A DNA stretch of 64,000 nt from Tubulanus polymorphus. Taxonomy: Eukaryota > Animalia > Nemertea. The notes under the pieces are model-generated. The model saw nothing but the letters and a program-made list of their open reading frames with translations. It did not search any database and was not told the DNA's origin. Shown here piece by piece: positions 2,458-44,054 of the stretch. Position 1 is the stretch's first letter; each line of letters starts with the position of its first letter. The stretch is taken from contig NC_134036.1 in the NCBI RefSeq assembly GCF_964204645.1, positions 9,899,859-9,963,858 of the forward strand. Reading direction: 5' to 3'. The translations under genes were made by a program, and so were the position numbers.

Positions 2458-4398
2458 CTGAAAACTATGCTTTTACGGGGTGATTCCCTTTGCACCTACT
2501 TAAGTGGTTCATTTTTGAAACCTACCAATGGGGCGTATATTGGTATATATATTACCATATTATACACACCCCACCAAACAAATTTGCATATATTTGCATA
2601 TTGCATATATACACCCCGCTAAGTCCATTCAATACCATTCATACACCGCAAGGAGGGCAGTTCACTCGTACATGTATTGGCATGTATTATACCCCACTGA
2701 ACTAATACACAACCCACGAGAAAAATAAGCTTTATATATACATTTTGTTATGTTTAATTGGCTGGGTGGCTGATATTTTCAAAAAATTGTTCATAAACAT
2801 GGGATCATATGTATATTTGATCGCGTTATCTTCACATTAATTTCCGATTACGATGTTCTTTAACAGATGCTTGTAGACAGGAAGCCTAGAGATATATAAA
2901 TGAGATTAGTTTCGAACGTCATCAATAACGCCTACAATTGACCTGAACGAAACCTTCTGGGTGCTACTTAAAACTTAATGAATTCTAAAGGTCAACCACG
3001 AGTCATTATAATTTCAAATTTGATGTCCAGACGTGCTTGGGCCCTACGGGAAGCAGAGAACAGTCATCGTTGACCTGTCAAACTTTCTAGGTACCGGTAC
3101 CTTCTAAGTCGAAGAAATATCATAGTCCATTCAAAAGTGCATTTCGAGAGGTTGACACCTGCCATCGCCGACACCAGAAGCCTCCTAATTGAGACATCCC
3201 TTTACAGGGTCACAATTTCTTCAAATGTCTCTCAATCTTAGCCTCATCAAAATTGAGTCAGTGTTCCATACAATGATTGGCTATTTCAGTTATCAATGAT
3301 TCAGTACCTGCTGGTTTTTTTGGAGCTGATGATTTAAGGTTTACCTTATAAATGTTTGGGAGGTTTATCTGTGGCCGATATAGGACGTGGAACCCGAGAC
3401 TTGATAGATAAATACGTATATTCACTTGTGGGGTGTATACAACTGATAATTTTAACATTTAACTATATCCTATGGGGTGAATTATTTATAGGCACAGGCC
3501 TTTGTACACAAGCATCCAGTCACTTAAGGGTGTTTAAAACGGTCATTGCATTTAGTTGTATCACTCTGACCTATATATACATGTTTGGGAGATTTATCTG
3601 TGGCCGAGATAGGACATGGAACCCGAGACTTGATAGATAGGTACGCATAGTCACTTGTGGGGTGTATACAACTGATAATTTTAACATTTAACTATATCGT
3701 ATGGGGTGAATTATCTATAGGCACAGGCCTTTGTACACAAGCATCCAGTCACTTAAGGGTGTTTAAAACGGTCATTGCATTTAGTTTTATCACTCTGACC
3801 TCTATATAGACGCTTCCACTCCTACATACCTTGAGGTTTGACCCCAGAACTATTCCAAATTGATTTTGTCAGCTGCATCGAAATTGATGGGTAGTTTACT
3901 GATTTTAACCCTCCAATAGTGTAAAGTGGATACAAAACGATGGTTTATTTGAACTGTAAGTTTCACTGGTCATATAAAGACCAAATAGATGTAAATATTC
4001 AAAATATTAAGAGAAATATACCATAGAAAATTGATGCCAGGTGAGAATTACTAGACTCGAGTAATTTGAAAATGTGTATGGTATGAGCTCAATTCTAGTA
4101 CACATCCTCCATGGAGTTTGGTCCTAGTGTATATTCTCTGTGAGTTCAACCCTAGAGCATACCTGGGGAGTTCGATCCTGTTGCACACTGGAGGTTCAAT
4201 CCTAATATGTATCCGTAAGTTCCTATTGGTTGATAAAAATGTTGGAGGGAATAGACACAGGTGGAGAGAGTGGACACAAATGGAGAGAATAGAAATGCTG
4301 AGATATACATGAAAATGAAATATATTTGTTAACAAACTTATTTCCATTCAGCCTACATCGCTTCTTTCAAAAAATCTTACAAATCGAATATCAGAGTC

Positions 4399-4592
4399 CT
4401 ACATCTTTTGCTTCCCGGATATGTAATTATGCACTCTCGAACGAATCTGCGCCAATGTACGTTGATTTTTAAGCTCCAAAACCAGTTTTTGGAGTTCGCT
4501 GCTTGGGGGCATTTTCTTTTCATCCACATAATGCCTTAACCTGGTGAAGAAAAGACGATTTTCTTCTTCTGACCACCTTCTCCTGACCACGC
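4399..4592 (-). CDS. Terminal exon of the element-1 YR gene, Myb/SANT-like domain
   Basis: tttag acceptor; RRRWSEEENRLF...KKMPPSSELQK...RTLAQIRSRVHN then stop; homologous to the exon at 54960-55174. Confidence 0.8.
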
Positions 4593-4687
4593 CTAAAATA
4601 TAGATTTGTGGAATGATAAAAAGTGTTCATACACATTTTTTTTCATATCGTTTATTGACTTAGTAAGAGTGTGGAGTGTGGTCGTAC

Positions 4688-42575: not shown

Positions 42576-43709
42576 ACATAGTCATGTGTTGCATTCTTTT
42601 TGATTACTTGGTACTTTATATTTCATTTCTATCTGCTGGTCTGAAATAAATGTATTCAGTATGTATCAGAGAAACAGGATATGAGAAATAAATTTTAAAA
42701 AATTTTGCGATGCATATATGACATTGTTTTATGTTCTTCCTTTCTCAAGACTTTATTGAGCTTCTACTCTATGGTGCCAGTATTGTCCATATACAATGAT
42801 CAACAGTCCAAGCTCGTTGCTTACAGTCTCCCAGGTTTACCTTGGGATGAAAAGTTGCCCCCAAAGTCTCCCAGAATCGAATGCAGTGATTTATTTTATG
42901 AATCTATACTAGATAATGGATCTTTGGCCAGGGTTTTATCCCGAAAAGTTTGACGATCGCTGAAACGATAGGGTAACCAGCGCATACAATTTATCAAAAT
43001 TTTTGTCTCAACTGTCACTGGGGTTATTGATGCTAGACAAATTGTCTGATATCATTGTTGAAATTGACAGTAAATTTTCCTTCCTCAAATTGAGTGGGTC
43101 ATGAAACATTGTTTCAGCAACTATTTTAAACCTTCACTTTAGATTTTTGCCCATGCAATATGGCATCTGGTTCATAAATCGTGACGATTCCGAGACAAAA
43201 ACAATGCAAAAAACTCTACTTTCTTGTGAAGATAAAAAAAATAATCCAATGTACTGAATTCCTAATGACACTCTGAGTCTGAAACAGTGATTTTTAGTGT
43301 GATTGATTGAACCATTTACGAGAGGTGCGGATCTGCACTTTTACCCAGTTAATGACATTTAGATCAATCGAAACTAACGAGGCCCTACACTTTCAAAAGT
43401 TTTCAGACCGCGAGCCCTTCGGCAATCATCACGTCGGGGTAGGCCTACCCTTCTCGACTACGTGTACCCTGATCGTAGCTGTGAAACGGCCATTCACCAC
43501 GCGTCACTTCTTCCGCTTGAACTTGAAGAATGAAGATGAACTTGGGAGCGTACTGGTTGGTCAGCCAGGCCGATTATCTCAAGAACAGAATTTGCACACG
43601 GTGGCCTAAGCTCTAGACTTTTTACCGAAATGTCTTTAGAAGTACTATCTTTAAAAAATACCTACGTATATTGATCGAGAGTGATCAATTAGACTGCAAT
43701 TAATCCACT

Positions 43710-43845
43710 ACAGAATGGCGGCCATTTCAAAATCATGCGCGGTATCATGGGATTGCATACACTAGCGCCACGAACGCAGTGAGAATGACGTCATGATCTA
43801 AGCCCCGCCCACTTCGTCCTAAGCTCCGCCCACTTCGTCGACAAT
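43710..43845. promoter_or_regulatory. Candidate promoter of the element-1 gene
   Basis: CpG-rich; ATGGCGGCCAT (YY1-like), TGACGTCA at 43786-43793, and two 21-bp direct repeats with CCGCCC GC boxes at 43798-43839. Confidence 0.5.
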
Positions 43846-44054
43846 GCCATCTATCGACGGCAAAACACATTAGTTATATACAGTGGCCTATGAAACCGAC
43901 TTACGCGAGAATGATTGTGTACATCAAAATCGATGAAAGAACGATACTGAGGGGTGTCAGACTCGCGGGGTGGCATACTCATCCCACAAGTTTTTCTCAC
44001 CCCGCAGGTAAGGTCTCAATAAGATTGCCACCCCATATCTAGCACATATAAGAG

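Follow-up and report, generated by a model that had tools for sequence, protein, structure and literature searches.

The window analysed here is a stretch of 64,000 nucleotides from the nemertean Tubulanus polymorphus (contig C12, positions 9899859-9963858, in an assembly of 268 Mb). Within it lies a candidate transposon of 41.6 kb, at window positions 2458-44054, which has a TA-repeat microsatellite on each side and encodes a tyrosine recombinase (YR). We call its family F1. Related families in the same genome are called F2 and F3, and a family of neighbouring elements is called L. The exons were found singly by comparison with a 1179-aa sister protein (P0001). The segments homologous to it, all on the minus strand, are 11882-12097, 9839-10858, 7875-8027, 7448-7666, 7239-7439, 7075-7146 and 4405-4584. 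The features of the locus, in window coordinates, are as follows.

1-2137, plus strand: end of an L-family element, tail to tail with the YR element, stopping at (TA)n
2138-2457: left compound microsatellite, (TA)n(TATG)n(TA)n
2458-2557, minus strand: 3' terminal region, motif CCCCGT-N15-AG adjoining (TA)n, from alignment with the F2, F3 and Lineus ends
4349-4591, minus strand: last exon, Myb/SANT-like C-terminal domain, stop near 4399
4687-7145, minus strand: small linker exons 4687-4750, 4870-4918, 6113-6162, 6265-6313 and 7030-7145, from RNA joints
7238-8027, minus strand: catalytic YR exons 7238-7433 (His, Tyr), 7508-7666 (second Arg) and 7875-8027 (Lys hairpin)
8583-9314: 154-bp satellite within an intron, recurring at 50.9, 58 and 59 kb
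9839-10858, minus strand: large exon encoding the N-terminal (core-binding) part of the YR, including the first catalytic Arg
11882-12097, minus strand: zinc-finger exon
12298-12759, minus strand: acidic exon with a (TCA)39 poly-Asp run
15101-28715: non-coding array of six ~2.26-kb tandem units, 97-99% alike
28808-32128, minus strand: 63/81-bp satellite, units multiples of three bases, gene strand open for 1086 codons
33940-35206, minus strand: SET exons, KMT5A/SETD8-like (33940-34281, 34490-34660 and part of 34898-35206)
36408-42858, plus strand: nested MULE/ZSWIM3-like DNA transposon with a PHD finger, right end truncated
43798-43839: GC-rich 21-bp unit in two copies near the 5' end, the putative promoter-like patch of the first-pass annotation
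43955-44054, plus strand: 5' terminal region, motif CCCCAT-N16-AG adjoining (TA)n, from the end-motif scan
44055-44335: right compound microsatellite, (TA)n(TATG)n(TA)n, of the same make-up as the left array

The first-pass annotation described one minus-strand YR gene over most of the interval. The minus-strand YR exons are there, but they are confined to 4399-12759. The SET exons share their strand, and only if both sets are joined as one candidate gene would the unit reach ~31 kb. Within 2458-44054, open reading frames (ORFs) of at least 120 aa are limited to the YR exon, the acidic exon, satellite ORFs and the nested MULE. The 63/81-bp satellite is open in other frames too, so its coding status is only putative. 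No tRNA or Rfam RNA genes were found in the arrays. As the annotation had said, the element has no long terminal repeat (LTR), reverse transcriptase (RT)-sized ORF or long terminal inverted repeat (TIR) of its own. The only DDE gene inside it is that of the nested MULE. A YR with no RT, LTR or DDE enzyme of its own is the content that defines a Crypton.

The two flanking arrays do match, as had been noticed at the outset. Their (TA)6-(TGTA)5 junction is found at only 40 places in the 268-Mb assembly, so the arrays are unlikely to be a chance pair. The chance of two such junctions lying co-oriented and 41.9 kb apart is ~0.006, and the matching compound microsatellites around the element are non-random. 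One could propose that the arrays are parts of one duplicated flank. We reject this because the outer flanks of the two microsatellites share no direct or inverted similarity above chance.

The ends of the element carry a common motif (CCCCRT, 13-18 bases, AG) in inverted orientation, with (TA)n outside each. We scanned the genome for this pattern followed by (TA)5, with the reversed pattern as control. There are 15 matches in the genome and none for the control. Ten of the matches are the paired ends of five copies of the sister family F2. Eight of the 15 were foreseen by the design of the pattern, and five that were not foreseen are the second, inverted end of each F2 copy, with (TA)n outward. 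Paired ends beside (TA)n at other loci had been proposed as a check of the element, and these five copies of the sister family carry such pairs. The window carries an end pair of the same inverted type at 2458 and 44054. The reverse complement from 2458 has ~100 bp of homology with the 3' ends of F2, F3 and an element of Lineus longissimus. The right end of the window element, which is the F1 5' end, resembles the F2 5' end, and the 3' ends of the two families are likewise alike. This argues against two elements placed head to head. Every visible end adjoins (TA)n: three of F1, ten of F2, one of F3, seven of the L family and three Lineus 3' ends. Insertion specific to a microsatellite, the trait described for some CryptonV families, is therefore seen at all of them.

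The F2 family has 49% protein identity to F1. Its five copies lie on five chromosomes (C1 18271675, C2 9603659, C6 16705988, C7 12067887 and C12 9396991), with 23.5-24.6 kb between the inverted ends, and they are 99.6-99.9% identical over the >15 kb that was read. Their 3' ends stop at one base, after which come (TA)n of differing length and then unrelated DNA. They share the layout of the window element: 5' end, KMT5A-like SET exon, coding satellite, zinc finger, YR, Myb-like tail, 3' end. The F2 SET exon is 44% identical to the window SET and stands upstream of a satellite whose units are multiples of three. A public gene model translates this satellite and follows it with OTU, zinc finger, YR and Myb-like tail. 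A SET exon lies beside F1 and its partial copy on C12, beside each of the five F2 copies, and at one or more further YR loci. An F3 element and one F2 copy stand tail to tail across a single (TA)n array. The F3 family is 65% identical to F1 (C12:9367168-9372333), and its 3' end is ~5 kb beyond the last exon.

It had also been asked that homology stop at the microsatellites. In the window family this is seen at the right end. The partial F1 copy at 11.1 Mb has a 5' end that stops at the end base of the window element, followed by (TA)11 and then unrelated DNA. The left end is single-copy at the DNA level. The only defined-end stop in this family comes from one partial copy. The region in which that copy lies (C12:11090001-11160000) is complex. 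A palindrome-like array of ~6 kb occupies copy positions 7043-13026, and another SET exon in the region (C12:11120112-11120330) is 44% identical to the F1 SET.

Outside this genome, three copies in Lineus longissimus terminate in the motif followed by (TA)4-7. In that species the homolog is an intronless gene of 853 aa with a variable array of ~520-bp units before it. Relatives of the recombinase number in the thousands, in molluscs, fishes, a hemichordate and a crinoid, and all are unnamed or uncharacterized. An atlas lead to cnidarian clusters scored under 0.9.

The size of the window element can be reconciled with that of F2. Its excess consists of 11.3 kb of extra 2.26-kb units (five surplus) and the 6.45-kb MULE. 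Once the surplus units and the MULE are removed and 619 bp restored, ~24.4 kb is left, which is the F2 size. The 619 bp are present in the 11.1-Mb sister copy at the place that the MULE occupies in the window. They were considered as a deletion derivative of the MULE, and this was rejected because they are unrelated to it. The window MULE has two copies on C5 that are 99-100% identical (C5:12860218-12866547 and C5:13154014-13160688). It must be a later insertion because of these copies elsewhere and its absence from the sister copy of the element. The young MULE carries ZSWIM3_N, MULE, SWIM and PHD domains. The C5 copies have a 59-bp inverted repeat ~180 bp past the shared part, so the window MULE is without its right end. 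The F2 family has amplified recently, and the window element has grown from ~24 to 41.6 kb by amplification of the 2.26-kb unit and insertion of the MULE.

The Arg, Lys, Arg and His-Tyr motifs are intact and stop-free in the window exons, and at the place of the first His in the classic tetrad, His is not conserved. In P0001, Pfam finds OTU and Phage_integrase domains, the latter (PF00589) with a score of 29-32 bits. A profile search with the recombinase against PDB sequences gave only chance matches, so a fold search was needed. An AF2 (AlphaFold) model of the catalytic region of P0001, built from 38 homologs, has a mean pLDDT of 86. Its top Foldseek matches in the PDB are all YRs or topoisomerase IB (XerH, XerA, XerD, Cre, lambda Int, Flp). 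Motifs, Pfam domain and modelled fold together identify the element's enzyme as a tyrosine recombinase with the PF00589 fold. The OTU exon of P0001 is absent from the window. The Pfam scans gave no DUF3504 signal and no DUF3435 match, and since the host is not a fungus either, the element is not to be placed among the Starships.

The gene is expressed. Reads were placed on 4,601 letters, window 3850-8450. Run X4 is RNA-like, with depth over exons only and seven joints, all of the form CT..AC, which is GT-AG on the minus strand. They define introns at 4592-4686, 4751-4869, 4919-6112, 6163-6264, 6314-7029, 7146-7237 and 7434-7507. The 3' half of the element is transcribed and spliced. Run X5 is raw DNA from another sample and covers the whole of 3850-8450 with many single-base differences. 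Therefore the element is not private to the assembled individual. The X5 depth is ~3x a rough expectation made without a control stretch, and we take no copy number from it. A short, very abundant repeat resembling a miniature inverted-repeat transposable element (MITE) lies at 5458-5636 and 7734-7758. There the X5 depth is in the hundreds, and many X5 reads have joints with GACG-type repeats between their sides.

We consider it likely that a single copy of a large Crypton-like DNA transposon, one that inhabits (TA)n microsatellites, makes up 2458-44054. It is a real, well-bounded element. The proposal of one very large mobile unit with satellites and nested transposons has held up in the main: both coordinates first given are exact ends of the F2 kind, the gene order is that of F2, and the arrays and the MULE account for the rest. 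Following the Crypton model, we infer that the recombinase would excise the element as a circle. At the circle junction the two inverted ends would face each other across a TA-repeat spacer, which would make a lox-like site. The circle could then re-integrate by strand exchange with a chromosomal (TA)n, leaving TA repeats on both sides. The complete compound array on both flanks would fit a circle that entered a like array, or a later exchange between alleles.

Several observations weigh against this interpretation. A single crossover does not by itself explain a whole compound array on both flanks. We saw neither an empty site nor an excision footprint nor a circle junction. F1 is otherwise represented by a single sequence (C12, 11.09-11.15 Mb), which is 99% identical, partial and rearranged: its 5'-exon segment lies inverted, it lacks the catalytic exons, and 39.5 kb of other DNA is interposed. 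The left 5.7 kb of the element (2458-8139) is single-copy bar short MITE-like pieces. In F2 the stop of homology at the 5' (TA)n is a putative one, placed from the motif positions alone. Two Lineus copies have their 5' homology boundary at CTTAAAC... without (TA)n. Finally, the weak inverted similarity between the two ends of the window element that was first pointed out does exist, but on its own it is within chance, since 43 of 500 shuffles reach it. It gains meaning only through the end motif shared across the families.

The closest known kin are microsatellite-specific CryptonV and the fungal Starships. The first-pass annotation had mentioned target specificity in CryptonV, and the literature bears this out: PMC8869645, citing Kapitonov and Jurka 2012 (Repbase Reports), states that some CryptonV families insert specifically into microsatellites. 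Like the element, CryptonV are DNA transposons that encode a YR and no RT. They are compared here by description only. They were described from cnidarians, and the host here is a nemertean. The element differs from them in its ~24 kb base, conserved inverted ends, SET domain and coding satellite, and in the OTU of F2. A YR is also the sole recombination enzyme of CryptonA, I, F and S (Goodwin 2003; Kojima and Jurka 2011, PMC3212892), for which the model is a circle intermediate with short repeats of element and target as crossover substrate. Animal Cryptons are reported to have no terminal repeats, no C-terminal domain and a length of a few kb (PMC3212892). The element has inverted end regions, a Myb-like C-terminus and a length of 24-42 kb, and so departs from the published description of the animal groups A and I. 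Starships of the Pezizomycotina are likewise giant, moved by a YR, loaded with cargo and choosy about their site, and a circular intermediate has been reported for them. They are fungal, with a DUF3435 captain at the 5' edge and tens to hundreds of kb of gene cargo, whereas the bulk of the element is satellites and its recombinase is near the 3' end. The DIRS, Ngaro and PAT elements also carry a eukaryotic mobile-element YR and sometimes inverted ends. They have RT/RNase H and an internal junction sequence, whereas no RT was found in the element and its gene has introns.

Another line of reasoning is that a TA-specific DDE transposase of the Tc1/mariner or Ginger2 type mobilises the element in trans, recognising its inverted ends. 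The YR and SET genes would then be cargo, or would only resolve intermediates. The inverted ends beside TA suit this. MarCry-1_FO, a fusion of a Crypton with a mariner, has TIRs and TA duplications that are ascribed to its DDE enzyme. The endogenous nimaviruses of sesarmid crabs (PMC10871703) are also large elements with inverted ends in TA microsatellites, and they enter (AT/TA)n through a Ginger2-like DDE enzyme with perfect 46-bp inverted terminal repeats. However, the window element encodes no such enzyme. The sole DDE gene inside it belongs to the nested MULE, a transposon that also occurs elsewhere and has a different type of target. The ends of the recently active F2 are only ~70% alike, which is unusual for cut-and-paste TIRs, and the end sequences change with the recombinase across families and genera. 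We think a DDE enzyme acting in trans is improbable.

One can also imagine that the locus is an immobile relic whose expressed SET-YR gene is now domesticated for the host. The left end is single-copy, the element is present in a second individual, and the gene is transcribed with intact motifs. According to the literature Crypton recombinases have been domesticated repeatedly. However, the domesticated DUF3504 proteins in the literature mostly lost their catalytic residues, and here these are kept. The close families are multi-copy and young, and the locus sits among transposons. It would be surprising if domestication were the right account.

It is also improbable that this is not one unit but at least two elements head to head, or a segmental duplication with breakpoints in microsatellites. 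In favour of this, the sequence at 11.1 Mb is an incomplete and rearranged second copy on the chromosome of the window, satellites and another transposon intermingle in the interior, and the (TA)n arrays here are common to neighbouring tail-to-tail elements. Against it, the 5' end, SET, satellite, YR and 3' end have the order and orientation of the 24-kb F2 copies, removal of the extra tandem units and the MULE leaves ~24.4 kb, and the right end matches the 5' ends of F2 in type rather than the 3' ends.

The neighbours of the Crypton-like element should be considered too. The L family numbers at least 7 copies, with 93-99% identity as far as window position 2137, after which come (TA)n of differing length and unrelated DNA. 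It spans at least 12 kb, part of which is an 89-bp satellite. Neither YR nor SET coding was found in the 12 kb or more that is visible, and no inverted partner with the same box was found for the L-family end. The L family may be a non-autonomous relative. The tail-to-tail pairs L/YR and F2/F3 each share an array, so TA arrays collect such elements.

On the other side of the element, a second YR gene (54963-64000, minus strand) runs past the edge of the window. It is deeply diverged, at ~30% identity, and its exons are 61738-63999, 61452-61751, 60731-60871 and 54963-55136. It has a Cys-rich coding repeat of 51/102 bp in one open frame with the zinc-finger region. No (TA)n of at least 7 units was found near this gene. 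Between the two lies a (CACG)n/(CA)n array (46803-46860), followed by a motif like the YR ends, ACCCAAT..CTG. The blocks 44960-46726 and 46724-50800 occur together at 11 or more loci with 94-99% identity. They may form a family linked with another microsatellite, or the array may be internal.

The ends of Cryptons are notoriously hard to define. To our knowledge no other class of eukaryotic DNA transposons is so poorly understood, and we know of no animal member with a worked-out recombination site. The family described here offers exact ends, a simple target, five near-identical recent copies and an expressed YR with intact active-site residues. For these reasons the circle-and-crossover mechanism is directly testable. 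It is possible, though we hold this only tentatively, that there is an undescribed superfamily of large SET and tyrosine-recombinase transposons in marine invertebrates. Each lineage would be tuned to one type of microsatellite, the ends would join across the repeat to form the recombination site, and the element's own KMT5A-like methyltransferase would mark the chromatin where it inserts or nearby. The family shows that animals too, and not fungi alone, have recombinase-driven elements of 24-42 kb. A histone-methyltransferase-like domain can be part of such animal elements, which also seed long satellites and TA arrays that draw further insertions.

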